Translations under genes and position numbers: made by a program | Part shown: in pieces, positions 1-64,000 of the stretch | How positions within the stretch are numbered: position 1 is the first letter of the stretch | Layout of the letters: each line of letters opens with the position of its first letter | Source: Bispira polyomma | Lineage: Eukaryota | Assembly: GCA_965649765.1 (NCBI GenBank) | Contig: OZ287748.1 | Coordinates: 43,524,001-43,588,000, forward strand | Reading direction: 5' to 3' | DNA length: 64,000 nt | The notes under the pieces: model-generated | Told to the model about the DNA's origin: nothing | Seen by the model: the letters and a program-made list of their open reading frames with translations, nothing else | Database searches by the model: none

Positions 1-2451
1 TTATTCTTCTGAATCAATTGACTTGTATACTCCAAATTCACAACATATCCATTTCTACAAAGACAGGCAACGTCAATGTGAATGTATTGTAATTCCTAGC
101 TCGGGAACACAGACAATCTTATTGGAAGAATTGTTTTTAGCCAGTGCTACCAGAAATCTATTTGATCACGCGACACAGGAAACACTACGATTCATTGGCT
201 ATTTTGAGAAAAATAAAACCAAATGGGAGAAGGAATATATCGCAATGACTCAGACGACAGCCACCATTGAAGAAGTAGTAGCAGCAAAAATGCTGAATGT
301 GTCCATAACCTATACGAAATTGGGATATTCTCTAAATGGATCACTTTATCTTTCTTTTATTGGTAATAAACTGTACATTTCGTACAAATAGTTATGTATC
401 TGTGTCAGTTGTAATGCTTGTAACAATAAATATTCTCATATCACACCTATTTATTTGATGACTTTTTTATTCAAGTGAAACTTTTTAAAATACTGTAGTG
501 TATAAACTTTAAATTTTTATAAAGTTTGAGTTTTGATAGATGCTTGTCCCATGTAATATGCACTCTGAGGGACCTGACTAGAGTTTAGACTACAACATAT
601 AGACAGTATTGTGTTTTAATTTTTTCTAGGTGATGATTCTAAACCTTACTTGCTACAATATATCAACAAGTGAACAACACTACGCCTCTGACGACGGTGA
701 AACCACCCTGTTGGTAACCAAAAATATTAAAGACAACACGCGAACAAGCGAGCCATTCACACACACAAATGCAACATTATTTGGCTCCATCACCAACAAC
801 AAATCCTCTAACACATTGACAGGTATGTAACATAACTACAATTGTCACAGATAATAAATTCACAGATAAACAAGTGTGTTTTCTCGACACACAACACTTT
901 TCAGTGTCCAATACAGAGAATACAGAAAGTAGTCTTATGCCATCATTGTCAGAAGTATAATTATAATTATTTTTGTTCCATCGATCGATATATTCAACAT
1001 CATTAGAAGGCTCACCAATCTATTCAAGTGATACTAGATCTATGAATGCATTTTTTATTTGCAATATTATTAATTTGACTTCTGTTTTAACACTAGTATT
1101 TAGTTAAATAGTTAAATACATTTTATATTGTAAAGGTTAGAAATCTTTCTGTTACAATTACAGAATAAACATCAGTTCAACTTGGTAAAAGATATAAAAG
1201 GTCAAGTTTGGAGGCCAAAGTAGTAAGTTTAATAATTGTAACCAGAAGACAGTGAAACTAGGGATTGAAGTATTACTTTAAATGATGTACATGTTACTTA
1301 GGGAAGTCTATAAAGGTAGAGGTAAAAAGATATAGTAATTTTAAAAACACCAAAGCCAAACTAAGAAAATTTATGTAAAGAGGAAGCAAAGGTAAGTGGT
1401 ACAGCAAATGTAGCTTGAGAATTCTGATGGAGAAATGATCAAACTGCAGATAACCTCCAATGACCATGTGCCATGACCATAGAGTGACACGTTATTATTG
1501 AAGGCATATGATCTCCTAAATTTGTGAAAGCTATGTGATCTAGTTTTTATGAAACCTGAAGTTTTGTGAAAACCTGTGAGTCTCTCTACATATTATTTAA
1601 TATTTTAGAGGGAACTTTTAAACCTGCCTTATTACAATTAGATACTCTGTTGGGGGATCATAACCTTACTTTCAGAACATCATATTTAGTTGTCTGAACC
1701 AAGCCCTTCTGAGTACTGTTCTTTCTTTAACTTATGATGAAATTCCGTATTATTATGGGTTAGTGCATTATCGCAGGTTAGTGGTTCGCAGTTCAATCAT
1801 TCACAAATTGTCCATCAAGATATAGACCAACATGATTGTGATTTATCTCATTTTTGTTAACTAAATGCATTTAATCAGACATATAAGACTAAGGGCCTTT
1901 CTTCTGTTATTCCTGCACCATTGTTAAATGTAATATGCAATATTGTTTAGGTGTTATAGCTGGTGTTGTATCCTGTGTTATACTGTTGCTGATATGTTTT
2001 GTAACTCTTAATAGAAAATTGGGCAATTTTATATTTTATTGCATCTTTTCTTTGAGAATTAGTTATGATAATGTTTTGTTCTTTTAGGCATCAGAAAAAG
2101 AATAGCCCAGAAGAACATACCTATGAAAACTCATCTGGTCCAAACATAGAGATAACAAGTCTTGATACAGTTAAACATACAAGTGGAATTGCAGATATAA
2201 TATCAACAAACATTGACAGACCAAATGAGACTGCAGAAGCTAAGAAGGATGGAGAGTATGAGGATGTTTGGGTACACCATGGCGAGGAAGCAGAAACAAA
2301 TAGAAATGGGAATGTTCTAAAATGTAATGCTGCAGAATCAATCGTAAGGGAACCTGAAGGTCACTATGCTCCTTTAACAACATATGAAAATAAACCTAGG
2401 AATACACAAGATAATATGTCAAATAGGGAGTATCAGAAGTTGAAGAAATAG
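1..2451 (+). pseudogene. Receptor paralogue copy 1 (5' part outside window), disabled: domain-2 exon <1-362, stalk exon 630-822, truncated TM exon 1951-~2006, cytoplasmic exon 2088-2451
   Basis: Exons align to intact copy 3. The stalk exon is 193 nt, from a 2-nt deletion (GATGATT-CTA vs GATGATTTTCTA) that shifts the frame. The TM exon 3' end and its donor are deleted (gtaact joined to cttaatagaaaattggg at ACT microhomology). The tail carries YENS, YEDV, YAPL, YENK and YQKL. Confidence 0.8.
1173..1545 (-). mobile_element. Relic of the 3' end (YR C-terminus plus B repeat) of an Ngaro-like element in the stalk-TM intron of copy 1
   Basis: 1380-1530 aligns with the YR 3' end of element 2 (25015-25170). 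The fragment starts at cagttcaactt, like the element-2 terminus cagttccacttt. It is absent from the equivalent intron of copy 3. Confidence 0.7.
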
Positions 2452-3542
2452 TGATGAAAGGAATTTCTGACAGTTCACTCACGTTTAAATGACATACCAT
2501 GTACAAAGTTTTCAATGTTGTCATAGTTTTAGAGCACTATGGTAGTGAAAAACTTGCATTAGATCATTTGTTAGCTTTTAATAGAAAACTTTGGGCGCCT
2601 TTGTTCTCATTAACTGCTTGTTTTATGAACACAACCAGTCCTGGATATCCCCTTGATATCACTATTCAGCCATTTCTGTTTGATATTGTTCTACAACAAA
2701 ATTTGAATATTCTCTGCACTGTAGAAGGAATTATGTTACTTCAAATTACATCAGGTGATAATTCCCTAAGTCAAGGTCAAAATGTCAGTTCCAAAATAAA
2801 AACAATTGACATGACTGTAGTGTGCACCATTTGTGCCATTACAAAATATGAACATTGCTGTCACGGAATCCTGTTTTTTAAAAAGTCAAATGTGAACAAA
2901 TTATAAAACAAAAAGGAACTGGGACCTTTGCTTTATGTAGTACAGCTTTAATTGATTGCTAATTGCCCACTGCTGAAAATGGTGACTTATGTTTTCAGTA
3001 ACCTTTTAAAGTCCAGCTCTAGCCAACTATACGTGTCATACATGTGGCAGTTACACCTGCCTAATGTAAGTTAAACTGGCTCAGTGTAGATAAACCTGTC
3101 CACTAGATGAAAATGTTTTTTTTTCTTTATTGGGCGTATTATAGCTCATTTTTTGGTGAAATATATCAGTTCAACAATTTAAAATACTTAAAGATCATCA
3201 ATTCTTGTGATAAGTTTTTACAAATACATGTTGACATTTGCATAGCTGGTTCATGCTTTAACTATTTAAACTATTTTATTCTATTTACTAGAACTGGAAG
3301 TTTGTTTCATTTTGGTACATAAGTTATGTATATATATTATTAAACCTTTAAATTTAAAACATATACAGAATATCAGATAAACTCATGGTGATGATATTGT
3401 TTACTAATTTATACTGATATAGACTGATAGATTTACTAATTTATAGTGAAATAGAATGATAACTACATACGTTAGACATATACATTATTTAACCTATTTT
3501 TAAATGATAGCTTTACTATTTTTTGCTGAATTAAATATCACC

Positions 3543-5823: not shown

Positions 5824-7523
5824 CCGGTGTAGCGCCAGATTTTTACTCCCCTTTTTTTTCTTGGGGGGTGTGGATTTGGCAAGGGGGGTGCCATATTTTC
5901 ACCCCCCCCCTTGCCAAATTTTTACTCCCCTAATCATAATGGCTATATGGGCATTATAGCTATTATAGATCAATAGGAGGTAACACTGTGGTATGGGGGT
6001 TTCATTGATGATTGATGGCAAATTCATCTAAGTAGTGAACCTACTATTATAATGTTTTTAACAGATTTGAGGGGTATGGTAATGTAATGTGTTTGGTTAA
6101 AACATTAAAAAAACATTACTTTCATTGAACTATGAAATATTTTGTTTTAAATTATTTATATCTTAACCATTTCTGTACGTACAAATCTAAATTTACATGT
6201 AAGATTACATTACAAATAACATGCTGTTCATACTGAAACTCATCAGTGCCTTGATTACTTGATTGTCTGATTAACTGGATTAAAAGATGATTGCATGTAG
6301 CTTCTCATAATGAAAGTCATCAGTACCTTGATTGTTTGATTAACTGGATTACTAGATTATTGAATGTGGCTCCTCATTGTGGTATGTACTACATAAATTT
6401 TTAAAGTTAACTTGGCTATTAGATAATTGGCCTCTCATTGTGGGTTGAGACAAAGCTGACTTGATCATTTAATAACTGAATGTGGCTTTTCATACTGAAA
6501 CTCATCAGTGCCTTGATTACTTGATTGTTTGATTAACTGGATTACCGGATGATTGGATGTGACTTTTCATAGTGAAACTCATCAGTACCATGACTACTTG
6601 ATTCTTTGATTAACTGGATTACTAGATGATTGGTTGTGGCTTCTCATAGTGAAAGTCATCAGTACCTTGATTACTTGATTGTTTGATTAACTAGATTACT
6701 AGATGATTGAATGTGGCTCCTCATTGTGGTATGTAATACCACAAAACTGGCTTGATTACTTAATAGCTGAATGTAGCTTATCATAGTGAAAGTCATCAGT
6801 ACCTTGATTACTTGATTACAAGTGGCTTCACATAATATAGTTGATTACTTTACTAAATGTGATTTCTCATAGTGTGGTTAACATTTTTTATGGTAACTTC
6901 AAGAAATACCCTTTGAAATTATCTTAATAGTGGCTTCTTAAGTGTATATAAAGAGGTGATGTAAAAGTTAACTTCAATATATTTCATGTGATAGTTAATA
7001 AAAGATTTGTATGAAGTGATTTTTATTTAATTTAAGTATCACTACCCTCTTATCAGTACCAGCCATACCTGCAAAGTTATCAGCCGTGTCCAAGTCATCC
7101 TATTCCATATCAACAATAAACCAGTACTTTTACAATCATTATTTGTTTTACAATCAATATTTTAATCATTGTTTTATTTATCTTTAATATTTCTAATGCC
7201 TATAAATCCCACAAATACCAATGACAGTGTCCCACATAACCTGTCAATAAATGCACATAATTAATTATCACTCTGATTGTAATTGAATGCAAGAGCAAGT
7301 CAGTGGTAATCAGTGTAATTGGATTAATCTTGAAAAAATCACCCAAGGGGGGTCAGTTTTTGGCAGGGGGCTCAGTATTTGGAAAGTTGGCTGCCATATT
7401 TTTCCCCCTTTAATCCTCCTATTGTTTGGGGGTGCAAAATTTGTTTGCCAAATACTCACCCCCCAAAAGATCAAATAGGGGAGTAAAAATATGGCAGGGG
7501 GTGATTTTATGGCATTACACCGG
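5824..7523. mobile_element. Non-autonomous DNA-transposon-like element with long imperfect terminal inverted repeats
   Basis: The left end ccggtgta..gcca..tttttactcccct..ttggggggtg..tttggcaa is the reverse complement of 7445-7523 (ttgccaaatactcaccccc..ggggagtaaaaat..ggcattacaccgg). No ORF; no clean TSD seen. Confidence 0.65.
6220..6870. repeat. Minisatellite, ~65-75 bp unit, inside the TIR element
   Basis: Recurrent catagtgaaa(g/c)tcatcagtaccttgattacttgattgtttgattaactggattactagatgattg, with about 6-8 degenerate copies. Confidence 0.85.
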
Positions 7524-10700: not shown

Positions 10701-10769
10701 AAATTTAAACATATCATGAATAAATAATAAGTATCAAAATAAATCGGATGTTTCATATCCAACACAACC

Positions 10770-11075
10770 ACCTTTCAGACCTCTGGTCAATTTTACCGCC
10801 ACCTCCCAGACGCCCCAGGTTATTTTAGAGTCACCTCCCAGAACCCTGGGCAATTTTACAGCCACCTCACAGACCCCCAGGTTATTATAGAGCCACTTCC
10901 CAGAGCCCTTGGAAAGTTTACTGCCACCTCCAGACACCAACTAGGCTGTTTTTAAGCCACCTCCCAGACCCCTAGGCAATTTCTTTACACCTCCCAAATT
11001 TCTTGGCGATTTTACAATCGTGAAACTGATTTATAGGCAAATTAACAGCCACACTCCCGAGCCCTGGGCGATTTC
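10770..11075. repeat. Minisatellite, ~30 bp unit, ~9-10 copies
   Basis: Recurrent gccacctcccagaccc(c)(t/a)gg(g)caattttaca. Confidence 0.85.
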
Positions 11076-12108: not shown

Positions 12109-12299
12109 TTAATTAAGTTAAGTAGGGTACCAGACCATTTAACAGGTAAAAAGTTAAGTAAGTAAACATCCCTCCCTGTTGTTAAGGAAAGTTGTTTACA
12201 AGCATGCTGATTGGTTAAGTCAATAAACAAGTAATTTAAGTGAAAATATATGGTCAGTTTGAATTTAGTCACTGACAGAGTGACATTGAAAAACAATTT
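12109..12299 (+). repeat. Element 1 repeat A1 (about 45 bp missing at the 5' end)
   Basis: 191 bp, near-identical to 17798-17988. Confidence 0.9.
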
Positions 12300-17268: not shown

Positions 17269-17752
17269 TGAGGTTGTGTATACTTCCATACCTAAAAAGC
17301 ACAGGTAAAATTGGAGCCTGATGCCAAGCTAAGGTCACCTTAACTTCATACTGGACCCTCAAGTTAGGGTCACCCCAAAAAATTTGGAAACACAATGTCA
17401 AAAGTTTTACCTTAAGGTAATATGACCTTAGCTTAAGGTTGTAGATGTCAACTTAAAGTCAATATGTAAAATGTAAATTAAAGAATTATATGAGTCAAGT
17501 TAATACTTAACTTGATGGTCCAATTTAAAGATTAATGTAAGTTAAGTTCAAACTTAACTGGAAGATTTAAATGTGTTATAGACTTAAACTGAATGTGTAA
17601 TCTTATCACGAGATGTAAATACATATGGTAGTTATATATATATATATATATATATATACTTTACAATATTACTTATTTAATATACACATATATAACAAAA
17701 TATATATACCCTCACTTAGCTTTGTCATTCCGATTAGTTGTGTTGGGGACTG
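17269..17752 (+). repeat. Element 1 repeat B1
   Basis: Matches 18303-18727; contains a (TA)n tract and ends in ggggactg. Confidence 0.9.
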
Positions 17753-17988
17753 TCGGGTACGGTGTCTAGGCACGGAACATGTCAGTCCTGCACAACCTTA
17801 ATTAAGTTAAGTAGGGTACCAGACCATTTAACAGGTAAAAGGTTAAGTAAGTAAACATCCCTCCCTGTTGTTAAGGAAAGTTGTTTACAAGCATGCTGAT
17901 TGGTTAAGTCAATAAACAAGCAATTTAAGTGAAAACATATGGTCAGTTTGAATTTAGTCACTGACAGAGTGACATTGAAAAACAATTT
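17753..17988 (+). repeat. Element 1 repeat A2
   Basis: 17798-17988 matches A1; followed by cccacccaccctttt. Confidence 0.88.
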
Positions 17989-18302
17989 CCCACCCACCCT
18001 TTTCCCTATGGAGAAGGACAATGTTCAATAGGATATGAATTGATTAAATATAGGAAAATTGACAATTGAGATGTGCATGTTTGCACTTAGGTCTGATAAT
18101 TATTAGAATCTTAGATGACCCAATAAGTGGAGGCATCCCTTGAATTGCATCTAATTGTTAATTGTTTAATTAGCAAACAATAACTTTATAAAATTGAATC
18201 CTATACATTGTTAGTGCAAAGACGTTGGCACCATAACCAGTATATTATTGTTTTTAGTCTTTTTCTTTTATACATGTATTAGTCTGTGTTGTCTTTTTAT
18301 AG

Positions 18303-18727
18303 TGAGGTTGTGTATACTTCCATACCTAAAAAGCACAGGTAAAATTAGAGCCTGATGCCAAGCTAAGGTCACCTTAACTTCATACTGGACCCTCAAGTTA
18401 GGGTCACCCCAAAAAATTTGGAAACTCAATGTCAAAAGTTTTACCTTAAGGTAAGGTGACCTTAGCTTAAGGTTTTAGATGTCAACTTAAAGTCAATATG
18501 TAAAATGTAAATTAAAGAATTATATGAGTCAAGTTACTTAACTTGACGGTCCAATTTAAAGAATAATATAACTGAATGTGTAATCTTATCACGAGATGTA
18601 AATATATATGGTAGTTAGATATATATATATATACTTTACAATATTACATATTTTATATACACATATATAATAAAATATATATACCCTCACTTAGCTTTGT
18701 CATTCGGATTAGTTGTGTTGGGGACTG
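18303..18727 (+). repeat. Element 1 repeat B2 (internal deletion relative to B1)
   Basis: Matches B1; ends in ggggactg and abuts the host stalk exon. Confidence 0.9.
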
Positions 18728-24015: not shown

Positions 24016-24193
24016 CAGTTCCACTTTAAGGCCAGGTGAGGTTGAGGTCAGTTAAGTAAAGGTGACCTTGAGAAGTCAATGAAAGATGTGTTTGCAGAAT
24101 TTATTCTGTACAAGTTAGTATTAATTTTACATATACAATTATAAAAACTAAGGTTTAAAATTGAAACCTTGGTAGAGATTTTAAATATACCCA
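24016..24193 (-). repeat. Element 2 repeat B2
   Basis: Appears identical to 24808-24985. Confidence 0.92.
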
Positions 24194-24587
24194 TGACTAG
24201 CATGTGCAACACCGTGTAAACGGGACTAGCCCTGGTTAAAACATAGTATACAACGTCCCTGTAAAATAACTAGGAATAATAGAGTGGCTCTCACCACAAT
24301 AGCACAAAAGATAAAGTATAATAGTACTTGCCTTTTAGCAAAACAACAATAACAATAGTAAGAAAATAAGTTGCTAGAGTAAAACGTTACATGTTAAAAG
24401 TAGGAAGAGACAAGTTAAAAATTTTTGTATAATTTTTGGAAAACTTACAGCTGCAAAGTGATGAGGCCAGCAAGAAATGAACACAAAACTGAACCTGCTA
24501 GCATTAGAGTGTGTTGTTGAAAAGTAAATAATAAGATAAATGGAAAGAGAAACCTTAGATAAGGTGGAATGAGGGGAGGAAGGTGGG

Positions 24588-24985
24588 AATTAAAAAGAAA
24601 TAAATTTTCCACTTGTTGATGGATGTAAACATAAATGTAAAATGGTGGAATGCTAAGGGAAAGCTATCCCCAAAGACAGGGTAGCTATATGATTGGCTAA
24701 TCGTGATAGAGAGAAGAGGGGGATAACAGAGTGAACCTAGCTAATTAAGGTTATACATAAATAAAGTCGAACTGAACCAGCAGACCCCTCCATGGTCGTG
24801 CTAAGCACAGTTCCACTTTAAGGCCAGGTGAGGTTGAGGTCAGTTAAGTAAAGGTGACCTTGAGAAGTCAATGAAAGATGTGTTTGCAGAATTTATTCTG
24901 TACAAGTTAGTATTAATTTTACATATACAATTATAAAAACTAAGGTTTAAAATTGAAACCTTGGTAGAGATTTTAAATATACCCA
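24588..24985 (-). repeat. Element 2 adjacent B1 (24985-24808) and A2 (24807-24588)
   Basis: The junction ctaagca|cagttcc joins the two element termini. Confidence 0.92.
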
Positions 24986-24993
24986 AACCCAAA

Positions 24994-25970
24994 CTAGGAA
25001 GAAGGGGGGATGATGGAAGCAAAAGTAAGTGGAACTATAGAAGCTTGGGAAGAAGAATTTTGAAGATAAGCCCACACAGCTGAGCTGCGCCAAAGGCCAT
25101 GTGACATAATCTGTTGGAGAGAAACATTATTGTTGAAAGCTAGGGAAGCCCCGGACCTACGGAAAGTGTGGAACCCATGGTAACTATGGTCCACCCCTAA
25201 ATGTTGGAGGACTAACTTTAGCGCAGATCTGATGTGAGAGTCTACAATAGGGTGATGAGGAGGGGCTAAGCAAGCAAAGAGGGGTTGGAAAGGTTTAAGG
25301 GGTCTAGAATGTAATATTTTTTGTAAAGCAGCTACTGGGCAGAGGACTTTATCCTGTAGAGAAGGGAGCTGGATGATGTGTGTGTCAGACCTGTTCTGCA
25401 TGTTCTTTGCCCACTTAAGGATCAAATGTGCCCCTGGAGGGCCAAAAACAACATCTTGCCGCAAGAAATGTCTGGAATGGTCAAATTTAGTTCTCGAATG
25501 GGGGGCGATATTTGACATCCTGAGGAAACCAAAGAAAGCGACTAAGAAAGAAGCTCGGAATAGCTGTGGGTCGTCTAAAATTTCACAAGCTTTGGAAATG
25601 TCCCTAAGAAGGTTGATGTCAAATATCCCTTTCTTTTGGGGTTTAAATTTAGAAGAAAGTGAAATGCTACGACAGAACAATGAAACTGAGTTGTGAGTGA
25701 GTGGACGAACGTCCAGGTTATATTTAGCAAACATGAATTTTAAAGCTGCCAGGTAATTGTTGACTACTCTGGGAGAAATACTGTTCTGTACTAGGTACTC
25801 AAGGAAAGCTAATACTGAAGTGACAGAGAGCTGCTGCAGCCCTGAGTAATGAAGAAAAGCTAAAAATGTCTTAAACTGTGATGTGTAAGCACCAGTGGTG
25901 GAAGGCCTCAGAGCAGAGTTGATTCTCTGTATGGCAGCCAGCCCCAGATGTAATGTGGAAGAGGAAGAAC
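24994..25970 (-). CDS. Element 2 tyrosine recombinase (intact frame; first in-frame ATG only at 25734)
   Basis: Motifs FLRMSN, WAKN, FHTFRR, HGLW and VWAY. The frame is open from the ttgtag acceptor at 25971. Confidence 0.92.
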
Positions 25971-25976
25971 CTACAA

Positions 25977-30136: not shown

Positions 30137-30157
30137 TCAATCAGTTAAAATCAGTTT

Positions 30158-30377
30158 AATTAAAAAGAAATAAATTTTCCACTTGTTGATGGATGTAAAC
30201 ATAAATGTAAAATGGTGGAATGCAAAGGGAAGGCTATCCTCAAAGACAGGGTAGCTATATGATTGGCTAATCGTGATAGAGAGAAGAGGGGGATAACAGA
30301 GTGAACCTAGCTAATTAAGGTTATACATAAATAAAGTCGAACTGAACCAGCAGACCCCTCCATGGTCGTGCTAAGCA
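30158..30377 (-). repeat. Element 2 repeat A1
   Basis: Matches 24588-24807. Confidence 0.92.
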
Positions 30378-31189
30378 AAGTTGTCATTTTCTTTTCATAC
30401 AACGAAACAAGTGGATGTATAATACATAGTATTATATACAATGTAATATAAAGAAAGTAAACATTTCTTAAAACCTTTTTCAGGTTAAAAATTCATATAG
30501 ATTTTGGCTAAGCTCCAATTAATAGTATGTCAGCCGCGAGTCATGCATGTCTTATTAAGTACTTGTTTACACCAAGTATAATTTACTTCCTCATTTAAAA
30601 AAAAACAACATTGGTTTACACTGACTTGGTATATTTTTGTTGTTGTAATGTTATGTTTGTGTTGAATACCTTTCAAAGTTAACAGGCTGTAACCAAGTTA
30701 TTATCTAAAAGCCTTCAAATGGATTACTTATCTATTGACAAGTAATATTTGTTAATTTTATATCAGACACATTGGAAATTTGATGGATGATTTTAATTGA
30801 TCACTGGAGTCATACAGTAACCTAGCCAAACCACGTCACTGTGAGTAAAAATTTGTGTCTTCATTCATGCAATTCTTATAAAAATGTAGTAAAACTTAAA
30901 ACCATATTACTTTGCATTTCTATGTTCTTATACTCAGATTATTAAGGTAAGAAAAATGATAAAAAATTTAAATGTAGATCCAGGTAATGTTTAGATCAGT
31001 TTGGCATCACTTCATCAGCTGACATAAAACTTTTTTACAAAACTGAAGTACCCAATTTTCGTTGCACATCTTAACTAAACAAAAAAACTGTATTTTGTGC
31101 CAGTTTTCTTTATAGATTTTTCGACAGGGAATTATGAAAGTTATATAGATTAATATACGACATAATACAGTATATCGAGCATGTAAATA

Positions 31190-38900: not shown

Positions 38901-41900
38901 TTATATGCTGCACGCTAGAATGATCTATCGCAAGATATTAGGTGTTGTCATTTTCTTTTAACCTTCATAAGCAAGCTCAAGACCTGTCCCTATCAAAAAG
39001 CTTATCCCTCCTGACATGGTTTTACCATCAGCGGTTCACTCTCCGGTAACCTCCCAAAGTATTTTCCCATGACATTTCTTGTTATAAACAGTTTGTAATA
39101 ACAATAACAAAAACATTTAAAAATTTCTTGTAGAGTTTCAGACTTCAAAAATATTTTTGATTTTTTTAAAGAATTTTTCTTTCGAACATTTTGTTATGTG
39201 TCCATTTAAATGAATGAAACCAGTCCCTAAGGTAGTGTCAAGTTCAAAGGTGATATTGGCCAAGGTCAAGTTGATATTATTTGATATTATTTATTGGTAG
39301 GATGGTATGAAGTGTAACACAGGTAATGAAAAGATTCCGTTTGAGGTTTTATTATTCACATATTAGTTTCTCTATATGAACATTTAACAGTTAGATAGTT
39401 ATTAAAGATGCTTAAAATTATAAAAATTGTATAAATATTAAAGCCACATAAGGCACGCTTGACAATAACAAATAGCTCAATCCAAGCTATACAAATCAGT
39501 AATACACAAATAGATACATAATGCCTCTAACACAAATATAAAATAATACTCCATAATAATAGGACTAGCCATAACATATGTAAACGTAACTTCGCGTAGA
39601 ACTGAGGCTACACACATGGCTATTATTGCTCGTCCATTTCACTTTGTATTCTAGACCAATTACAAGAATCACACTTGGGTACGCTTACTCCTATACAAGG
39701 CATACACTCCAACATGTTATACAGATGTACCCTTATTAGGTGGCCATAAGCCAGCCATAAACAGTCATACTAATTCTAAAAAGTCATGTCATTGTCATTA
39801 TTTAAACTTTGCCTGGTGCAAGGAGCCCGAGACCCGGGCCACCTAATCGCCTAGCAGAGAGTCCTGCCTTTTGGAGCTCCTATTTAACCCTGGCCCCCTA
39901 GACATGTAGCTCAAGGGGGTTAGGAGACAGGATCCACACGGGCTATAGGCTCTGGCTACCAAGGCAATTTTTAACATTCTGTAATTCAACATGTCATAAG
40001 TCATGTATTAAGACGTGATGGTCATGCCTCTCTGCCATCCGTAATCCCTATAGGATTCGGAGAGAGGCTGCTAGTTCATTACTAAATTTGTCACAAGTCT
40101 TTGTATCTGATAACTTTTAAATACTGGAAAACTTTATAATAGCTTAGGTAAAGGGGAGGGGGTGGGAAAAATAAAATGTACTTGTTGTTGCTTCAAGTTT
40201 CAATATGGAAGCTTAAATTAGCGGGAACATAATTAAGTAGCTTATGCTGTGATTGGTTGAATTGTTGATTGACAGGAGGTCAGCATAAAAGAAGTCTAGT
40301 CAAAATAAATGTTTTAAGGTTGTACAGAAGTATTAACCTGTGGACTGAGGTAGCAGTGCCCTAAAGGTGTTCTGCTTACCAAACCAACAGAAATCTTATC
40401 ATTGCTGAGAAAGAGTTTGCCTGTTGTTTTTTCCAAAATTGTACTCGAATGCATATCTCTATATCATTTTTGCTTGTGAGTGATAATTATTGGCCAAAAC
40501 TTCAAGAATGTTTACATTATGCTCATATATGCATTTCATATGTATTATATACTCTTTCAGCTTGTTTGTTTCATATGTCCTTATCCATTTTCTTTCAGAG
40601 TCAGAGCTACTTCGGATGTGTTCAGCATTTACTGTTTTTTCCACTTTAATTAACTTATATCATCCCAATTCAGATGTCCATTTCTTCAAAAACAGGCAAC
40701 GAGAATGTGAATGTCTTGTGATTCCTAGCATGCTTAAAGTTAAAGTCAAATTGGAAAAACTGTTATTGGCAAATGTTAATACCACCAACATTATATACGA
40801 CCACATAGTATATGAAACACTACGATTTGCTGGCTATTTTAAGCGAAATCTAACTAAATGGGAGAAGGAATATAGCAACATAACAACGACTGTAGCCACC
40901 AATGAAGTAGTATTTTATGAAAATTTTCCTAATGTGTCGATAACCTTCACAAAGATAGGATTTTCATCAAATGGATTATTTCATATTACTTTGGAAGGTA
41001 ATACCCTAGATGTTTTGTATCTGTGATAATTGCAGTGCTTGTAACAATAAATATTCTAATATCACGTTTTATTTGATATTTTTTTTTTTTTCTTTTAAAG
41101 CAAATCCATCTTGCTAAAGCTTCTTTTAAATATATTAGCCTGCAAAATTGTTTAAAATTGCAACTTAACAAGCTTATTAGAAATTGCTGCTTCAGTAATA
41201 TGAATACATTTCTGAGGTATTTGCTCTTTGAAAAGGAAAAAATATATATAACATAAATCAACCTAATATATTTATAATTGTAGATGTAATCCTTCTTACT
41301 TCCTTATGTCAGTCCTGTGGTACTTTTTACATGTAGGTGTAATGTTTACAATTTCAATGGAATTTCGATTACAATAACTAGTCAGTATTATGTGTTTATA
41401 TTTAACCAGGTGATGATTTTCTACACCTTACTTGCTACAATATATCAACACGTAAACAAGACTACACCACTGACAGCAGTGAGTCACCCACACACACAAA
41501 TGCAACATTAATTGGCTTAACCACCACGTCAGTGTCTAATACAGAAACTACACAAACTAGTTTTAAACCACCAACATCTACAGAATCAGTATCACTCTCT
41601 ACCCAGAAATTGCCACACTTAACCTCATCAAAAGGCACATTAGGATATTCAACTGAAGTTTCTTTAAAGATGGATTCCTCTGTGAACCAGGATTATGGAT
41701 TGACATCACCAAAAAGTGCCATGTCAGATTCACGTGAAAACAACCAATCCTCCAAGACATGGACAGGTATGTAACATAACATAAATAGGTAATTAATTAA
41801 TTCACAGATAAACAAGTGTGTTATCTTGACACTGTACTCCAATCATGTTGACTCCATCACTGATATTTCAGTGTTCGATACAGAGAATAGAGAAAGTAGT

Positions 41901-43595
41901 CTCACGGCATCACTGTCAGAAGTACTTGTATCATTAGTTTAGTTCAATCAATCGATATATTTAACATCATTAGAAGGTACACCAGTGATACCACATCCAT
42001 GAATGTATTTTAGTTCCATCAATCGATATATTTAACATCATTAGAAGGTACACCAGTGATACCACATCCATGAATGTATTTTATTGCAAAATTATTTAAT
42101 TTAACTTGTGTTTTTACAGGTATGTTTAGTTCAATACATAAATATGATATATTCAACATTATTGGAAAGTAAAAAAGGTCATTTAAGTGATACTACATCT
42201 GTGAATGTATTTTTTGTTTAAAAAATTATTAATTTGACTTGTGTTTCCACATTCTTATAATTGAATACACTTTATATATTGAAGGTTGGAAACCTTTCTG
42301 TTACATTTTACATAATAAACATGTGTCAAACATGATTAAATTATAAAACCCTGAAGTTTCAATGCTTATGTTACAAATAGATAGTTTTGGTAGATGACAA
42401 TCTTACATATTTTTTAATATTTCAGAAAGAACCTTTAAACCTGCCTTATGACAATAAGTAAAACTGTTGTAGGGTCTTTTTAGAACAGCATCTTTAAGAG
42501 TTCTCTGAACCAGGCCTTTCTGAGTACTGTTATTTCTTTATCTTATGATGAAATTCCGTATAAGGGTTAGTGCATTATCGCAGGCTAGAGGTTCGGAATT
42601 TAGTCATTCACAGATTGTCCTACAAAATATAGACTAATATGATTGTGATTTATCCAATTTTGTTACTTAAATAAGCGTTAGTGCATTAAATCAGATATTC
42701 AAAACTAAGAGTCTTTCTCTTGGAGAGTTATTTCAACAATAATGTAATATGCAATAATGTTTAGGTGTTATAGCTGGTGTTGTATCCTGTGTGATACTGT
42801 TGCTGATATGTTTTGTAACTGGGGCAGCCTGGTGGTACAAAAGGTATGTCTCTTATAACTCATTCATCAAAAGAGAGAGGACCAGGGCCCGTATTCTTGA
42901 ATGTATACTCAGCTTAAACTCATACTCAACTCAAATACAGGACATGTGGAAATCATTGTACATGGAAATAACCTCTACTTGTGACCATTCGTTTTAATAG
43001 AGATTTTAACACTGAATTCAAATATGAAGTCAGATTTTAGATATTTTTGCTGTATCCAGAATTGTAGTGAATCCAGATTTGAGTTGAGTATACGTTTGAG
43101 AATACCAGCCCTGTTATTTATTAAAGCCATCAAGGAAAATATTCATTATTTCAATGTGTAACGTGTTAGTTCTTAGAACAAAAGTTACTTTATTTTTACT
43201 CTTAATAGAAAATTGGGCCGTTTTAGATTTTATGGTATTTTTTCTTAGGAATTGGTTATTATAATATTTTGTCTTTCAGGCATCAGAAAAAGAATAGCCC
43301 ACAAAAACATACATATGAAAACACATCTGCTCCAAGCATAGAGGAGACCAGTCTTGATACAACTGGATTTGCAGATATAACATCAACATACATTGACAGA
43401 CCAAATAAGAGTGAGGATGTTTGTATACACTATGGCGAGGAAGCAGAAATAAACACAAATGAGAATGTTCTAGAAAATAGTGCTGCAGAATCAGTTGTAA
43501 GAGAAACTGAAGGTCACTATGCTCCTCTGACAACATATGAAAATATACCTAGAAATACACAAGATAACATGTTAACCAATGAGTATCAAATGTGA
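35902..43595 (+). CDS. Receptor paralogue copy 3, intact 499-aa type I membrane protein: signal peptide, SUEL-lectin-like domain, Cys-containing domain 2, S/T stalk, TM, Tyr-motif tail
   Basis: Exons 35902-35959, 36669-36959, 40599-40997, 41410-41766, 42765-42843 and 43280-43595. All introns are GT-AG, phases 1,1,1,1,2, giving 1500 nt with no internal stop. Splice sites are conserved in the paralogues. TM: VIAGVVSCVILLLICFVTGAAWWYKR. Confidence 0.82.
37910..39010 (+). mobile_element. Degenerate L2/CR1-like LINE RT fragment in intron 2 of copy 3
   Basis: Motifs DLCAAFDTIDH, LAWFNSYL, FYAEDTQLY, LKLNPDKTEF and FKTATLVFK. Related to 51780-52860. Confidence 0.85.
39700..40380 (-). repeat. Second copy of the structured-core repeat
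   Basis: The reverse complement aligns with 23020-23500. Confidence 0.7.
41935..42085. repeat. ~71-bp tandem duplication in the stalk-TM intron of copy 3
   Basis: tcaatcgatatatttaacatcattagaaggtacaccagtgataccacatccatgaatgtatttta occurs twice. Confidence 0.85.
42886..43110. mobile_element. MITE with GGCCCGTATTC TIR and CWG target site (PIF/Harbinger-like)
   Basis: TIRs ggcccgtattc / gaataccagcc, flanked by cag and ctg. The empty site is visible in copy 2 (gaggaccag|ttgttc, ~20105). Confidence 0.8.
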
Positions 43596-44180: not shown

Positions 44181-46146
44181 ATTATGTACTAACATGTATA
44201 GTGTTTGGTATAGAGATGTAGATAAAGTAATACAAATATAAATGATATTATGGTGTTCTCTCTAGATTGGGGGGATTAGGGGGGGCGGGGGGGGGGGGTG
44301 TTGCTGTAACCACTTTTGATCAGTTCACAAATCAGAATGACTTGGCGATGACCCTGTAAAACCCACCTTTTCCCCTTTTTAGGACTTGTCACTTGGCTGT
44401 ATACTTCAGTAAACATGGAGGCTTCATATATTTTTCAACACAAAAAAACATGTGTGTGGTGTTTGTTAATTATTCCTGGTGTAGTTGTTATGGGTTTTTT
44501 CTATTGGAAAACTAAAATGACCAATGTTAATTTATACTGGTGGGCTGACACCGAGGTGTCAGCCCCCTCAGTTCTGGTACCAGGCTACTGGGGGCCAATT
44601 AGGCCACCTGGGGTCACGAGGGCACATATATAAGGGTTTGGCGCCAACCAGCGCCATCATTAAAACTTCAACTGGTCAAAGTGACAGTGCTTTTACAATT
44701 GGGCGTTTACTACCCTTTTTAATATTTTAAAGCTTTTAAATTCTGTCATGGCTCCAAAACGAGAATACCAGTGTAATGCATGTATGGGGAGACATGAACG
44801 CCCTGTGGGCAAAAAATGACGATTTATTGATGCCAGCGTCGCCGAGGATGTACCTACGGTTGAATCCAGTGCTGGTCAGTCGGATTCGGTGTCTGAGCTA
44901 ATTTTACAACAATTGCAGTCTCTCAATAGTAAAATGGACAGCATGGATCAATGCGTTAAGATGACGGAGGCGGCGCTGTGCACACCCAGCGCCAATAAGG
45001 CTAGTATCTTACCTACTACCAGTGCTAATGTAGTTTCCAATGTTGTTACCCCAAGTATAATTGAACCAGTGGTGGAGGCAGTAGTTCCGTCTCTAGATTT
45101 TCTGCGGTCAAACGAAAATTTACAAAACCAGGTAGACCAATGGCTACTCCAGCTCCAGCAGCTCAATCAACTGACTGGAGCAGGTAAACTTAAGTCCCAA
45201 CGTGGGGGTACAGATGCTCCAATCAAGAAGGCAGTCGATTGGCCTCAAAATTTTGTGCTCTCGGGGGCTAAGAAGGTTAGACCCACCTACAACGACTTAA
45301 CCTTGGTTCAGTTTACTTTGGGATTCATAAGGTGTGTGCAAGAACAAAAATTCCCGGAAATTAAAGAAGCCATGTTGGAATATTGTGCCAATCTTATGGA
45401 TGACGCACACGACTTTTCGTGGGAAGCTGCTAAAGATTCCCATGCCATCCTTTTAACCAACACGGAATTGGACCGCCTTAAGTGGACCGATGTGGACAAG
45501 GTCGATCGAATCCGTCGGGCACATGCCCAACGTCATATATCGGGCAGTTCCAGTAGTGGTACGGGTACCAAATCCATTGGTAGTAAAACAAAGTTGCCAA
45601 GCAAGAGTCAGGGCGTGATATGTAGATTTTTTCAGGAGGGGACCTGTAAGTTCAATGCTACTCATAGAACCTCCGGTCAACTCTTCAAACATTGTTGTGA
45701 AACTTGTGATGGCAGCCATCAAACAAAATTGTGTCCAAAAAAGTAAAAAAACTAAGGGCCCACTGCAGAAATGCAGTGGGGAAACCAGTATTTAGCCATT
45801 ATGTATTAACATGTATAGTGTACTGTATAGAGATGTAGATAAAGTAATACAAACATAAATGACATTATGGTGTTCTCTCTGACTTGGGAGGATTAGGGGG
45901 TGGTGGGGCTGTGACCACTTTTAATCAGTACACAAATCATAATGATTTGGCAGATGACCCTATAAAACCCACCTTTTCCCCTTTTTAGGACTTGTCACAA
46001 GGCTGAATACTTCAGTAAACATGGAGGCTTCATATATCTTTCAACACACAAAAACATGTCTGTGGTGTTTGTATATTTACTCCTGGTGTAGTTTTTATGG
46101 TTTTGTTTTACATTGGAAAACTAAAATGACCAATGTTAAATTATAC
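44181..46146 (+). repeat. ~350-bp direct repeats (44181-44537 and 45798-46146) flanking the gag fragment
   Basis: The two copies align throughout with scattered mismatches and include the host intergenic motif atacttcagtaaacatg. Confidence 0.85.
44536..45790 (+). mobile_element. Ngaro-like element 3: 5' end plus gag only (pol and YR missing)
   Basis: Starts ACTG-N29-CAGT. gag 44748-45755 (MAPKREYQCNACMGRHERPVGKK*, KLKSQRGG, DRIRRAHAQR, CRFFQEGTC) has two premature stops and ends in a slippery site plus hairpin. Confidence 0.85.
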
Positions 46147-48110
46147 CTATTTGTATTGTGTTGCATGCTCACATTCTATTGAAGATTCCAATAAAAGAAA
46201 AGAGAACAGACAAAACAAAATTGATATGGGGCATAACATAATGTTACTGCTTCTCAAATGGAGTTTACTTGATAAACCTTCCAATCTTAATAAAACACTC
46301 TGTAAAAATCTTCCCACTGTCATATCTGATAAACTGGTGGCTCAAGTCTCATTTTATTGTGTCACAATGCCAACATTTAATAAAAAGTGAACAATATGCT
46401 TGAAAGGGTCGTGGGAAAATACATTTTGAAGTAATTTTATTTGGAGAAGTATGAGGTTACATAATAAAATTGTGTGTCTGTGTGTAAATATAGATATATA
46501 TGTGTGTGTTTGTTCACCAAGTGCTTTATGTTAACCTCAAACTCATAGAACGGTGTGTGATTTTGCTTATGGCTAGATTATTTTTAACTCAATGCAGTTG
46601 TGATGTGTTTCTTGGATAAAAATAAATATTATTTCCAGCCATAAGCCTTTTTCTGCAGTGACCTTTTAGCTTCAACCTTAATACCTCAGTGATTACAACA
46701 ATGTTTAATGAAGACTCTTCTTTGGAAACTTGAGTGAGTCGTATCTTTGTTTAGTACTCCATGTATAATTTACCATTTATAATTTACTTCCTTGGTTGAA
46801 AAACACCCATTGGGGTACCTTAACGTGTTATGTTTCCCTCATTATAATATTATATTCATGTTGAATATATTTAAAAGCAAACTGGTTGTAACCAAGTTAT
46901 TATCTGAAAGCCTTCAAGTGATTAATAATATATGTACTAGTAATATTTGTTAATTTTAAATCAGATACTTTATTTAGACTTTTCACAAGGGATAAAGATT
47001 AGCTATTTTTGATGATGACATTAGTGATTGTGTTTATGGATAGATTATTTGTTACTTCAATACATTTGGATGTGTTTATTGGAGAAAAATTAAATAATAT
47101 TTCCAGTTATCAGCTACTTTGGAGTGACCTTTTAGCTTGAACCTAAATATCTCAGTGATTACAACAATGTTTAATGAAGACACTTTGTTCGAAACTTGAG
47201 TGAGTCATATATTTGTTTAGTACTCAACTTTTTTATACCATGTACAATTTAATTCTTTTTGTAGAAAAAGCCATTAGTGTATATTGGCGCGTACATTCTT
47301 CATTGTGATGTTATATTTATATTGTATATATTTAATAGATGACTGGTTGTAACCAAGTTATTATCGGAAAATTTTTGAATATTTATTAATACATGTACAA
47401 GTAATATTTGTCAATTTTATATAAGACCCTTTATTTAGACTTTTCACAAGGGATAAAATATTAGCTATTTTTGCTAATGAAGCTAAATAATGGAAGATAA
47501 TTCCCACTTAACACAAGCTTTTTAGCAACAAATATGTAAGTAAAAATATGTGACACTAAAATTTCTTGAAATTGTAAATTAGTGACTGGATAAAATTTGG
47601 CTTGCATACAGTACTTGTATCTATATAAGCACTTTTTATCAGTACACAATTCATATATATTTCAACTCACAAAAACTTAGCTGTAGTTTTTATTAATTTA
47701 TTTCTTGTGTAAGTTTACAAAATTTGTTTTGTATTGATATAACTGTGACAAAATAATATGTTTTGGAAAATACACAGAAGTAAAACTTTAAAACAATCAG
47801 TATAAAAAAATTTACTAAGATTTGCATCCAATCTGAATATTAGAAAGAAATATATGAACATGTTAAATATCAACTAAAACCAACCTACCAAAAGTTTACA
47901 AGACTCTTAAAGGTTTCTCCCAAGCACATAATTTGTTCAATGTCAACAAGTGCATCTTTTTCAAAGTAATGACTATATTGGCCCATGACATAAACATAAA
48001 CATATACGTACTGTGTCTTTAAGACAGGCAGTGATCCATTGAATTTTATTTTTTATATTATTTCAATTCACACAAAAAAATCTCCTAGATGTTAAACTTT
48101 TAATTGTGTA

Positions 48111-51779: not shown

Positions 51780-52860
51780 TGGTTCTACTGGATCTATCCG
51801 CTGCTTTTGACACTATTGACTATCACATTCTCCTATGTTGCCTTGCTTCTTAGTACAGTTTCAGTGGTACTGCTCTTGCTTGGTTCAAATCATATTTAAC
51901 CGACATATATTAAGCAGTTAAAATTGGTTTATCTGTTTCTGACTTTATCAAGCTTAAATTTGGTGTCCCTCAGGCTTCAGCTCTCAGTCCAATCCTTTTC
52001 TCATTTTACACAAAACCACTTAGTCGCATCATCAGTGCATTTAGTTCAATTAAATATCATTTTTATGGTAATAACAGTTATACATTCATATTACATTATC
52101 AAACACTGCCACTGCTTTTGATACTCTTAAAACTTAAATGAAAGAGATGCAGGAATGGATGTTATCAAATAAGCTTTAGCTTAATCCTGACAAAACAGAA
52201 TTATTGTTTGGCACTAGTAAACAACATACTGAATTATCAAGTTTCTTCTCAATAAACATCTTGAGAATATAATATCACCTTCAGATGTACATAGTCTCGT
52301 AGCAATGTTTGACACTGATTGTTCATTCAGCAAACATGTCACTTCTGTCTGTAAATCCTGTTTTGTCAGTCTGAAAGACAAAGACAAGCGATTTGTCATG
52401 GGAAACAGCTGTGTTGTTGGCTTATGCACTTGTAAGCAATCGAACTGACTATTCTAACTCATTGCTGAGCAGTTTGTCTAGCAAGGACATGTCACACTTT
52501 CATGCAATACAGAATATTCTAGCTAACATCATCAATCATACCCCCAAATATTCCCCCATATCTTCAGTTCTAAAATATTTGCACTGACTTTCTGTTTTTA
52601 TGTATGTTTAAAACTGCCACATTGGTCTACAAGTCTCTCAATACAAGCCTCCTAAAATACCTCAGCCCATATCTCACCACTTACTCTCAGCAAGTCAATA
52701 CCTGTCGTGGTAATCCTAACAAATTATTTCTCACTGTCCCTACCTTTGATGTCTGCATACACAAATCAAAAATCCTTTTCAATCATAGTTATTCATATGC
52801 TGCGCGCAAGTTATGGAATAACCTACTACAAGATATTAGCTGCTCCACTTATTTTTGAGA
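51780..52860 (+). mobile_element. Degenerate L2/CR1-like LINE RT fragment
   Basis: Motifs LLDLSAAFDTID, FGVPQ, LNPDKTE, NRTDYSNSLL and FKTATLVYK. Confidence 0.85.
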
Positions 52861-57700: not shown

Positions 57701-60700
57701 GGCTGCTGGTTTCTCTGCAGAATCTTGACCAACTAAATATATAACCTACTAAAAAAGTGGACGTTAAATATCCAAATTCAAATTCAGATTCGTCATCCAA
57801 CTTCATATCTCATTGACTTAATTTCATGTAGTTATTTAAGTCTGCATAGGGTTTTACATGTCTTTGCAGGGACTTTATGACACTGAAATAAGAAGTGACC
57901 ATGTTCTCTAAACTTATTGACTCTCAAGATATCCAGAAAAATTTCAAAACAAATTAAATTGAAAACTATTAAAATGTCCAGCATCTGAAAAATTCAGTGA
58001 GATATAAATAAGTAATCACAGGCAATTTGTAGGTTTAATCAGAGTTTACAGGTAATCATCTGAATTTTTAATTGTGGTAGCCATTTGAGAAATCCTAAGC
58101 CACTGTCCTTATATAATACTGTCCTTAGCAAGGGTTTCCAAAGTTTCGTACCCAGGTCTTACTTACTGCATGAACTGTTGTATCTGTCTGTTTTCCTGAC
58201 ACATATGCTTCGAAGCCCAAAAAGCACCGCCCTATATTATTCAAAATTGTCTGTTAATAATATCATGCAAATAACGGTTTACTTTTAACAAGCATTTGTA
58301 TACAAATCAAAGCCTTCCATGTGCCACCCTAGTTTTTCACAGAGTACCTTGTTAAATAATTCAGGTTGTAGATTCTTATTCTTTTAGAGATAGAACAACA
58401 TGTAAAGTGGTATTGACATATGTTATTGACAGAGACAAACAAGGACTTGTTATTATAGATTCACTACCTCTAATGGTTACAATAATACAAGATTGTGGAA
58501 CACATTAACCGAATAATAAAAGTTGGTTTGGTTTCAAAAAAGCACAGCACATTACAGGGCCTTTAACTGACCTTGGTTTAGACAAATAACTGCCATAAAA
58601 CTAAATTTCTATGTGCGTAAGATACATTTACCATTAAACATAAGTTTGCACAAATTTTAGTTACATAATGCTATCCTATAAAACAATATCCTCTTATGCT
58701 CCAGGTCCCAGAGGACAGTGATAAGTTGTGATGCATGAATTTTATTATTATAGAATATAGAAACTTCATACATATAAAATGTTACATTGTACATAAATCA
58801 TGAAATATACAAAAAATAAAATTGCTTACCTACATAACAGTAGCCTCTCTGGAAGGACTAATCTACTATATCTTTACACACAGGATTGGCTAGATATAAA
58901 CCTAAAATAAAGCCCAAACCCTTCAAATGTTTGTTTGGGTTATGAGAAAGACCTCAGGCTGAATGATTAAAGACATGCTAAAATATATCAATTAATGTGA
59001 TACTCATAACAGGCCCTACTTGTGGACATTGTCAGCCAAAAGGCGACATGACATAAGACATACTAAAATATATAAACTTTACAAAACCAATACAGTGCCT
59101 ACATTTTTAAAATATAAAATAAAATACACATTTTGTATGAGAAGCAATACAGTACACATATGGGGCTATTCCTAGTTATAGTATCCTATGTGGGTTTAAA
59201 TATAAGCATGAACTCTAACTGGGTTACCATAACATTAAATCTGTGTTTGATTTAACTGGGACAAGTATTAAGCAGTTTGATACAAATAGTTTTAAGTACT
59301 ATGCTGTGCTTTAAGTCCAACCTATTTATTCCAATTTTTTTTCTATTGTAATACTACTGTGGACTGTGTCATATTAACATATTAACATACTATAACAGTA
59401 ATAACATATACTAGATACTTTGGACTGCTTCTCCAAGTTTAAAGCAAGTATAGTATATTAAAAGCAGTTAATAATAAATAAATAATAATAGTTATATAGC
59501 GCCCTATCCATTCATACAAATGCTCTAAAGTGCTTTACAATATAACATTGAATAAAAATAATTATATAATACAGTACAATAAAAATACATAATGTTTGAT
59601 ACAACAGTATAGAATTTAACGACCCTGCTTACAGCTAGGGGTTTCACTAAGAAAATAAGCTAAAATTTGTTTTTCCAAGGCTATTTTACATTTTAATATA
59701 TTTCATAAGCTGTTTTAAAAAGATATGTTTTAAGTTAAGACTTGAAGGACCCTACAATTATTTGACATTTTCTGGCGAATCATTCCATAATGCAGCTGCA
59801 GATTTGTTGAAACATCTGTTGCCATAGGTTGCAGTGTGTTTTTGGTACGACCAGAAGATTTTTTTGTTTGGGATCGTAGGGATCGGGATGGTTGATATCT
59901 TTGGACAAGATCAGTAAGGTATGCAGGAGCCAGTCCTTTTAGTGCCTTGTATGTGTAGCGTAAGATCTTGTACCCTGGCCTGTACTTTACTGGAAGCCAA
60001 TGCAAGGTGTAGAGTACTGGTGTAATGTGATCCCGTGTGTGTATACGTGTTACAAGGCGAGCAGCACAATTCTGTATCAGTTGAACACGCCCGGTATGTG
60101 GCTTGGGAATACCATGGATTAATGCATTCCTATAATCCAGACAAGAGATCACCAATACTTGCATCAGTGTTTTACAGGCATCTTCTGTAATATATTGGCG
60201 GATTTGGCCAATATTTTGAATCTGGTAGTAGCATGACTTTGATATGAAATTCACCTGTTTTTCCATTGTTAGGTAAAAAAAAAATAGTCACTTTAATTTA
60301 ATTTAAATTTATTTACTGTACTTCACTGCATATTTTCCTATACATGGTGTAATTGAAGATAAATGGATTCATCTTCAACAATAAAACCAGCTCTAATTTT
60401 GCCTTAATTTATTTTACTGTATAAACATAGCACTCTAGTTTTGGGTGCTTCTCTAACCTGACTGTACTGAAGCGGTTTAGCAGTTGCTATCTTGGCCAAT
60501 AGGTCGTCATTGGAGTCCTGATTACTCAAGCCATCAGTAATTAGTCATATTAAAGTTTTGTTGACTTGTGATTTCAATGCTGTAGATCATACAAATAACA
60601 ATGCAGTGTGTCTGCAATATCAGATCCTCGTGTAATGCTGGCAATGTTGAAGTTACTTAATATCAGTCCATCTGTCAGGATATCAGGTCATCTGTAGAAA

Positions 60701-63700: not shown

Positions 63701-64000
63701 TAAAATATATTGTATTTATTTTATTGTTAAAGGAAGAAAAAGCGCCATAAACATAACAAACCAGAGACTGTTGAAATGATAAATGGACAAAATGCAGATA
63801 TTAATCACTTGCATCATTTTTTAAGTGAAGCCACAGCAAATGAAGATTTTGTGTCTGTACAGGTTCTTAACCACAAACCACATGCTCCTGTTACATCAGT
63901 ATCATCACAATCATTACAAACAAAACAGAATAGGAACATACAGCACTCAGATTGTGAAGAAACTGGAAACCATGGTTTCATTGAATTCGTAGAAGTAATC
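54731..64000 (+). CDS. Receptor paralogue copy 4 (3' end outside window): same ectodomain architecture, divergent TM and cytoplasmic exons
   Basis: Exons 54731-54788, 55913-56203, 62153-62548, 62775-63179, 63368-63446 and 63733->64000. GT-AG introns with the same phases as copy 3; frame open. TM IIAGVTVALIIVCLIITLVIICICKR, then KKKRHKHNKPET... Confidence 0.8.
57576..57788 (+). mobile_element. tRNA-derived SINE in intron 2 of copy 4
   Basis: A box tggcggagtgg, B box gttcgaatc and a (caaatt)n tail. 15-bp TSD ttcgtcat(a/c)caactt at 57561-57575 and 57789-57803. Absent from the equivalent intron of copy 3 (~37770). Confidence 0.9.
59468..60270 (-). mobile_element. L2-like LINE 3' end (ORF2 C-terminus, 3' UTR, (TAT)n tail)
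   Basis: Motifs ISCLDY, IQNCAARLV, LHWLPV and LAPAYL; 3' end gcgctatataactattattatt. Confidence 0.88.

Follow-up and report, generated by a model that had tools for sequence, protein, structure and literature searches.

A tandem array of candidate recognition receptors with a predicted SUEL-fold tip and two tyrosine-rich tails in Bispira polyomma

How worms and molluscs discriminate microbes or parasites without antibodies is an open question, and few receptor families of this kind with their own signalling tails are known. The present analysis concerns a stretch of 64,000 nucleotides from Bispira polyomma (C1:43,524,001–43,588,000, where C1 is contig OZ287748.1 of assembly GCA_965649765.1; hereafter the window). 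Self-comparison of the window revealed four tandem paralogous units, all on the + strand, which are referred to as copies 1 to 4. The original prediction, made from the letters of the window, described them as a rapidly evolving cluster of recognition receptors undergoing birth and death. What do these genes encode, and what shapes them? We hold with moderate confidence that they belong to a lineage-specific tandem family of type I recognition receptors, similar in organisation to paired receptors, in which a tip domain is exchanged between two tails. The two-tail organisation, which had escaped the original prediction, was the most informative feature of the array.

The genome comprised 1.035 Gb in 75 contigs, and the window had a GC content of 33%, contained no N, and showed spliceosomal introns. 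The cluster size was obtained from exon-by-exon searches of the genome, which gave 14 matches for exon 2, about 18 for exon 3, 15 for tail A, and 5 for tail B. Every match lay within C1 43.43–44.14 Mb on the + strand. The array sequence was read in small stretches rather than as one continuous piece, and the exons, grouped by their order along the chromosome rather than by transcripts, formed about 20 units over about 0.7 Mb of one chromosome. The tandem cluster was therefore real and extended far beyond the window, being bigger than had been claimed.

In the window, copy 3 was the sole open copy among the four. It had an open model of six exons encoding 499 amino acids, with GT-AG introns of phases 1, 1, 1, 1, and 2. 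The ATG lay 2 nt behind an acceptor-like AG, which was retained in all five units examined and points to a probable non-coding first exon. The predicted protein contained seven N-glycosylation sequons, a stalk with 41% Ser + Thr, and a single hydrophobic peak. Furthermore, short-read contigs from three DNA-like runs agreed with copy 3 without differences in many pieces.

The other three copies departed from what had been expected. Two intact copies, one lesion in each disabled copy, and one common tail had been proposed, and none of these held. Copy 4 had the same first four exons and phases as copy 3, but another transmembrane (TM) exon and an unrelated tail. Compared with three paralogues with open tails of 408–409 amino acids, its tail showed a 1-nt deletion near 63,983, as judged from the assembly sequence alone. 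The frame ended after 100 amino acids, at a stop 34 nt past the window end and before any Tyr, and it was missed because it lies just beyond the window end. Copies 1 and 2 each carried several lesions. The shared exon phases proposed for all four paralogues were confirmed for copies 3 and 4, whereas the common architecture was not, the signal-peptide and 8-Cys exons being missing in copies 1 and 2. No exon 1 or exon 2 of these copies was found in the window or in the 8 kb upstream, and a genome-wide profile detected no exon 2 between C1:43,466,407 and copy 3. Between copies 1 and 2, exon 3 was 87% identical and the tail 94.5%, and the two are 5'-truncated duplicates of each other's kind. Moreover, the exon-3 frameshift of copy 2 was also present in two other array units, which indicates that the broken copies were themselves duplicated. 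Together with the array size and the broken units, this bore out the proposed birth and death.

The domain at the tip of the receptor is encoded by exon 2, and a resemblance to SUEL/rhamnose-binding lectin (RBL) domains had been noticed from its Cys spacing. A structure model of exon 2 reached a predicted local distance difference test (pLDDT) score of 85 in one of five models, the other four giving 50–58. In the fold searches, the top 15 Foldseek and the top 12 VIA rows were all SUEL-type domains, with Z scores of 8.6 to 6.0 versus 5.2 for the next fold. The top rows were all latrophilin lectin domains, CSL3, SUL-I, or Plasmodium P113, and the fit to ADGRL3 had a Z score of 8.6 and a root mean square deviation of 2.2 Å over 81 residues. 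ESM Atlas neighbours of exon 2 were found at 0.91. In addition, the Pfam SUEL profile (PF02140) matched weakly in 12 of 12 exon-2 copies (best E 0.0014), with scores of 16.7–17 bits, which were about half of the 31.4-bit cut-off and thus below threshold. These models and searches agreed with the earlier resemblance and indicate that exon 2 adopts the SUEL/RBL fold. The exon contained eight Cys, six of them invariant, and the last four aligned with those of SUL-I. The alpha/beta fold would be common to the latrophilin lectin domain, CSL3, SUL-I, EVA-1/C21orf63, and P113. By alignment, exon 2 differed from them in that the two N-terminal Cys were placed otherwise and the middle loop had one Cys.

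The motifs YGR, DPC, and KYL mark sugar-binding RBLs (PMC10817417). None of the three was present in any of the 12 aligned exon-2 copies, as had been noted for YGR and DPC in the window. Exon 2 therefore fails the lectin motif test in spite of its predicted SUEL fold, and the motifs argue against rhamnose or galactose binding. In receptors, RBL domains have often lost the sugar residues, and protein binding has been proposed for them instead (PMC2430599).

The 132-amino-acid exon-3 domain was modelled as an all-beta jelly roll of nine strands with a low-confidence pLDDT of 52, and the GOLD and nucleoplasmin folds scored as well as or better than CUB. The N-terminal Cys, I-x-L-Y-x-P, CxC, and the terminal S-I-x-F ... 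F-x-L stood at CUB motif positions, and one relative in a second species kept two further Cys at CUB-like places. Exon 3 is thus probably CUB-like, judging from the motif positions and the extracellular location. It resembled the CUB domain (PF00431) in its modelled jelly roll and motif placement; no match was obtained to PF00431, other Pfam families, or PDB sequences. No relatives were found among 5.8 billion proteins, 1.84 billion representatives, or the ESM Atlas features, although length limits weaken some of these blanks.

The ectodomains of copies 3 and 4 had been reported to differ at many residues with their Cys kept, and this was confirmed. Their amino-acid identity was 72% in exon 2, 53% in exon 3, and 57% in exon 4, and every Cys of exons 2–4 was retained. 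The pairwise dN/dS (omega) of copies 3 and 4 was also tried as a selection test and rejected, as it was about 0.5 and gave no sign of positive selection alone. The site models were applied exon by exon. For exon 2, the likelihood ratio test (LRT) of M1a against M2a gave 44, with 16% of the sites at omega 3.75 and about 60% at omega 0.2. The LRT was 16 for exon 3, 1.6 for tail A, 1.3 for the TM exon, and 0.1 for tail B, the last with three sequences. The stalk gave an LRT of 14, which was not trusted in view of low complexity, indels, and seven sequences. The exon-2 LRT was still 34.7 without the broken copies, and the signal was retained in both halves and in all thirds, each with its own tree. 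In five neutral mosaic null simulations the LRT was at most 5.3. The site models thus show positive selection on the SUEL exon and none on the tails. The selected sites were 5, 35, 36, 38, 44, 46, 51, 75, and 85. By alignment, they fell on the YGR-equivalent position, in the loop behind it, and on either side of the Cys that corresponds to that of DPC, which would place them on the ligand face of RBLs.

Two kinds of tail, without detectable similarity to each other, were found behind these ectodomains. Tail A, of about 115 amino acids, contained YEN(T/S), YE/DDV, YAPL, TTYENI, and a terminal YxxL. TTYENI is the consensus of the immunoreceptor tyrosine-based switch motif (ITSM) and was found in 11 of 13 A tails, and the terminal YxxL resembled the inhibitory motif (ITIM) in about half. 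Copy 3 has lost two of these five shared Tyr motifs: YENT, YAPL, and TTYENI were kept, while YEDV was gone and the terminal YxxL lacked its final residue. Tail B, of about 408 amino acids, contained YESM (YxxM), YEGI, two YSYA, and repeated YD(Q/E)AL. Neither TM type contained a charged residue. In three A-tail units, a common change from AG to AT was seen at the TM acceptor; it was not counted as a lesion because splicing could be rescued by an AG that lies in frame 9 nt downstream. Skipping of the TM exon in these units would give a secreted form.

The tail type followed neither ectodomain tree. A single clade of B-tail genes was rejected by the approximately unbiased (AU) test, with p 1e-5 on exon 3 and p 1e-7 on exon 2. 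For instance, with exons assigned to genes by position, one A-tail gene at 43.87 Mb and one B-tail gene at 43.96 Mb were 98.6% identical in exon 2, within a tract of at least 2.1 kb, and 79.9% in exon 3. In another gene pair, exon 3 was 96% identical and exon 2 86%, and the exon-2 and exon-3 distances were uncorrelated among units. Furthermore, a second, distant SUEL-like subfamily was found at the distal end of the array, with seven matches at 44.04–44.15 Mb. In at least one gene it had a different stalk followed by the same TM A and tail A, which indicates transfer of the tail module from one ectodomain type to another. Elsewhere in the genome, about 140 canonical SUEL matches exceeded the Pfam cut-off, many of them in tandem runs, and the genome apparently holds several such receptor clusters. 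The SUEL matches over the cut-off lay on contigs C2, C3, C4, C8, and C12, a large expansion of the domain.

A search with tail B as the query revealed two relatives in a second species (ENA assembly ERZ22147071). In both genes, tail B was preceded by a homologue of exon 3 and then by stalk and TM exons, with the same phases. The identity between the species was 23–36% in exon 3 and 63–68% in the C-terminal half of tail B, and the two genes of the second species, when compared with each other, gave 41% for exon 3 and 89% for the tail. The Tyr residues of tail B were invariant across the species at 16 of 19 positions, compared with 37% of all residues (Fisher p 2e-5). This cross-species contrast and the site models per exon support the rapid evolution proposed for the ectodomain, for which the copy 3/4 pair alone was insufficient. 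A metagenome-contig scan with tail B gave no match. In the second species, another gene with a TM and a Tyr-rich tail (18,074–18,603 of that sequence) lay 7 kb behind the tail-B gene; its tail resembled tail A by eye but scored below shuffles, and homology was rejected.

In the proposed mechanism, the SUEL-fold tip, resting on a CUB-like spacer that is followed by a glycosylated stalk, would bind a variable outside ligand. Since the exon has lost the sugar-binding motifs, rhamnose is a less likely ligand than a protein or some other glycan. Binding might be relayed by tyrosine phosphorylation of tail A or tail B. Tail A could plausibly recruit phosphatases or Grb2 via its ITSM-, ITIM-, and YxN-like sites, and tail B could plausibly recruit PI3K or adaptors via YxxM and its many fixed Tyr. 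Unequal crossing-over and exon exchange would join one and the same tip to either tail, the arrangement of paired receptors. The two tails may signal with opposite signs, and defence towards microbes or parasites would be the likeliest driver. A more specific scenario is put forward only tentatively: invertebrate (probably annelid) SUEL-fold paired receptors would combine a pathogen-driven tip with an inhibitory ITSM/ITIM tail or a long activating tail through recurrent exon exchange, converging on the logic of KIR, Ly49, and Siglec. The array offers candidates for study, in which a few surface positions of a lectin fold change quickly and the two tails lend themselves to separate assays, and it would be a case of the SUEL fold being redeployed in a diversifying recognition tip.

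Vertebrate paired receptors (KIR, Ly49, Siglec-5/14, and PIR) carry a near-identical ligand-binding exon on two tail types, with positive selection on the tip and birth and death. The array was alike in the near-identity of its tip exon in an A- and a B-tail gene, in its positively selected tip, and in its birth and death. It differed in having other folds, TM segments without a charged residue for an adaptor, and two tails that are both long and Tyr-rich. The Biomphalaria clusters PTC1/GRC and PTC2 are likewise clustered, divergent, single-pass invertebrate genes with a proposed recognition role, but their defining traits are hyperdiverse alleles and an association with resistance to parasites (PMC7494358). 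PTC2 genes have no known domains and their paralogues are less than 50% similar, whereas the array paralogues were 50–75% identical and had the predicted SUEL fold. Library searches with exon 3 turned up only the second species, no direct comparison with grctm or PTC2 being made. Unlike SUEL/RBL proteins, the array genes combined a single SUEL domain with a jelly-roll domain in a multi-copy array. The original prediction had called the locus analogous, with homology not shown, to Hydractinia Alr genes and the snail clusters, and this was right; the array worked like Alr, PTC, and vertebrate paired receptors in layout and evolution. The kind of system is already known from Alr, PTC, and vertebrate paired receptors, and is not a new principle. 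None of the characterised genes gave a one-to-one match, and no paper describing this architecture was found in the literature library, which is incomplete.

Several points weigh against a functional family of paired-receptor-like genes. Most array units were broken by stops, frameshifts, truncations, or insertions, and perhaps 3 to 5 of the about 20 were open. The omega of whole exons was 0.5–0.7 for the ectodomain and the tails alike, and near 1 for the stalk. The site models were our own implementation, with scaled branch lengths, naive empirical Bayes, and a small null sample, and the exon-to-gene pairing in the exchange tests was made by chromosomal order, not by transcripts. A strict activation motif (ITAM; Yxx[IL]x6-9Yxx[IL]) was found in no tail, a version with an 11–12-residue spacer occurring in 8 of 13 A tails, and the tail-A motifs were short and no better conserved than the background within the species. 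For the second species, no SUEL exon was detected in the upstream sequence, which was limited to 2.5 and 7.6 kb. No RNA run contained the locus, the splice junctions being predicted only, and the allelic data came from the three DNA-like runs, with at most two samples of one study, and gave no usable alleles. The broken units, including three of the four copies in the window, the high whole-exon omega with the stalk near 1, and the RNA result would also fit a mostly decaying, transposon-ridden array under relaxed selection, in which the apparent selection and mosaicism were by-products of gene conversion. However, the strongly constrained majority of exon-2 sites and the six invariant Cys do not fit relaxed selection, the excess class was restricted to the ectodomain, the mosaic nulls failed to reproduce the signal, and tail B and the exon structure were conserved in the second species. 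Decay alone is therefore considered unlikely.

If the receptors function, the driver might be other than defence. Gamete-recognition or other reproductive surface receptors, with a tip evolving fast through sperm–egg or mate conflict, would fit a surface domain under positive selection. Gamete proteins are among those with CUB domains, and spermadhesin was among the weak fold matches of exon 3. Moreover, RBL/SUEL domains were initially isolated from marine species' eggs (PMC2430599). A set of about 20 copies with tails of two classes, exchanged exons, and numerous pseudogenes would nevertheless fit defence families better, and the length and conservation of the Tyr tails suggest signalling in active cells, so that a gamete role has a low probability. 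Adhesion or guidance co-receptors with an endogenous protein ligand, such as EVA-1 or the latrophilin lectin domain, are suggested by the best structural matches, which were latrophilin lectin domains, several of them protein-bound, and by the loss of sugar residues and possible protein binding of receptor RBL domains (PMC2430599). An endogenous ligand poorly explains positive selection and turnover, and EVA-1 is a conserved low-copy gene. It is single-pass with RBL domains, like the array genes, but has two of them (PMC2430599), and a guidance role seems very improbable. An allorecognition locus with homophilic, allele-specific binding between individuals was also weighed. No genetic allorecognition system is known in annelids. 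Hydractinia Alr shares with the array clustered single-pass genes, one domain per exon, shuffling, pseudogenes, and divergent tails with Tyr motifs (10.1101/2022.03.04.482883). The Alr ectodomains consist of Ig V/I-set domains together with Fn3-like ones, whereas the array genes have the predicted SUEL fold and jelly roll and no strict ITAM. The fold searches found no Ig domains, and by these models the array would not be a member of the Alr family; allorecognition is considered highly unlikely. A defence-driven, paired-receptor-like family is therefore preferred.

The features of the window are listed in Table 1.

Table 1. Exons of the four copies and the element inserted in copy 2 (window positions).
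Feature	Start	End	Strand	Basis	Remarks
Copy 1 exon 3	1	362	+	comparison	jelly-roll/CUB-like; starts 33 nt before window; frame open
Copy 1 exon 4	630	822	+	comparison	short stalk; 2-nt deletion near 640; early stop
Copy 1 TM exon	1951	2003	+	comparison	149-nt deletion takes away donor
Copy 1 tail A exon	2088	2451	+	comparison	
Copy 2 exon 3	11650	12044	+	comparison	1-nt deletion near 11,816
Tyrosine-recombinase retrotransposon	12105	18725	+	repeats and frames	6.6 kb; split direct repeats; inserted in copy 2
Copy 2 exon 4 remnant	18725	18860	+	comparison	without acceptor; end approximate
Copy 2 TM exon A	19985	20063	+	comparison	donor GT lost
Copy 2 tail A exon	20271	20634	+	comparison	
Copy 3 exon 1	35902	35959	+	gene model	signal peptide
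Copy 3 exon 2	36669	36959	+	model, fold search, site models	8-Cys domain, predicted SUEL fold, without YGR/DPC/KYL; holds positively selected sites
Copy 3 exon 3	40599	40997	+	low-confidence model	132-aa all-beta jelly roll; CUB-like by motif
Copy 3 exon 4	41410	41766	+	gene model	conserved L-T-C-Y strand, then Ser/Thr stalk
Copy 3 exon 5	42765	42843	+	gene model	TM type A
Copy 3 exon 6	43280	43595	+	gene model	tail A
Copy 4 exon 1	54731	54788	+	gene model	signal peptide
Copy 4 exon 2	55913	56203	+	gene model	predicted SUEL-fold domain
Copy 4 exon 3	62153	62548	+	gene model	
Copy 4 exon 4	62775	63179	+	gene model	stalk
Copy 4 TM exon	63368	63446	+	comparison	type B, unlike type A
Copy 4 tail B exon (start)	63733	64000	+	comparison	extends about 930 nt beyond window

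The retrotransposon in copy 2 took out the first part of exon 4 together with what was left of intron 3. Its frames were gag-like, reverse transcriptase, RNase H, and recombinase, in a layout of the DIRS/Ngaro type, and its split repeats paired 12,109–12,299 with 17,798–17,988 and 17,269–17,502 with 18,303–18,536. A second, divergent element of the same layout lay at 24,016–30,382 on the − strand. Its repeats (24,588–24,812 with 30,158–30,382, and 24,016–24,193 with 24,808–24,985) were 98–100% identical, so the element is probably recent. A gag-only remnant at 44,181–46,146, between direct repeats of 88–93% identity, was a deleted relative of these elements. Fragments resembling long interspersed nuclear elements were recognised from translations at 31,200–34,100, at 37,914–38,915 (repeated at 51,789–52,807), and at 59,730–60,266, without a significant Pfam match. 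An Rfam search gave no match.

Some smaller observations concern the units themselves. Intron 5 of copy 3 contained a very high-copy short element at 42,883–43,090, similar to miniature inverted-repeat transposable elements and with internal inverted similarity. Its read depth was about 10,000 times that of the flanks, and copies 1 and 2 lacked it in the corresponding introns. In three units, at C1:43,968,659, 44,008,831, and 43,604,889, the first part of exon 3 was partially duplicated in tandem about 300 nt before the full exon, for which alternative acceptors or decay are possible. Between the genes, tandem repeats had units of 77 nt (6,223–6,817), 31/62 nt (10,764–10,982), and 461 nt (46,557–47,480).

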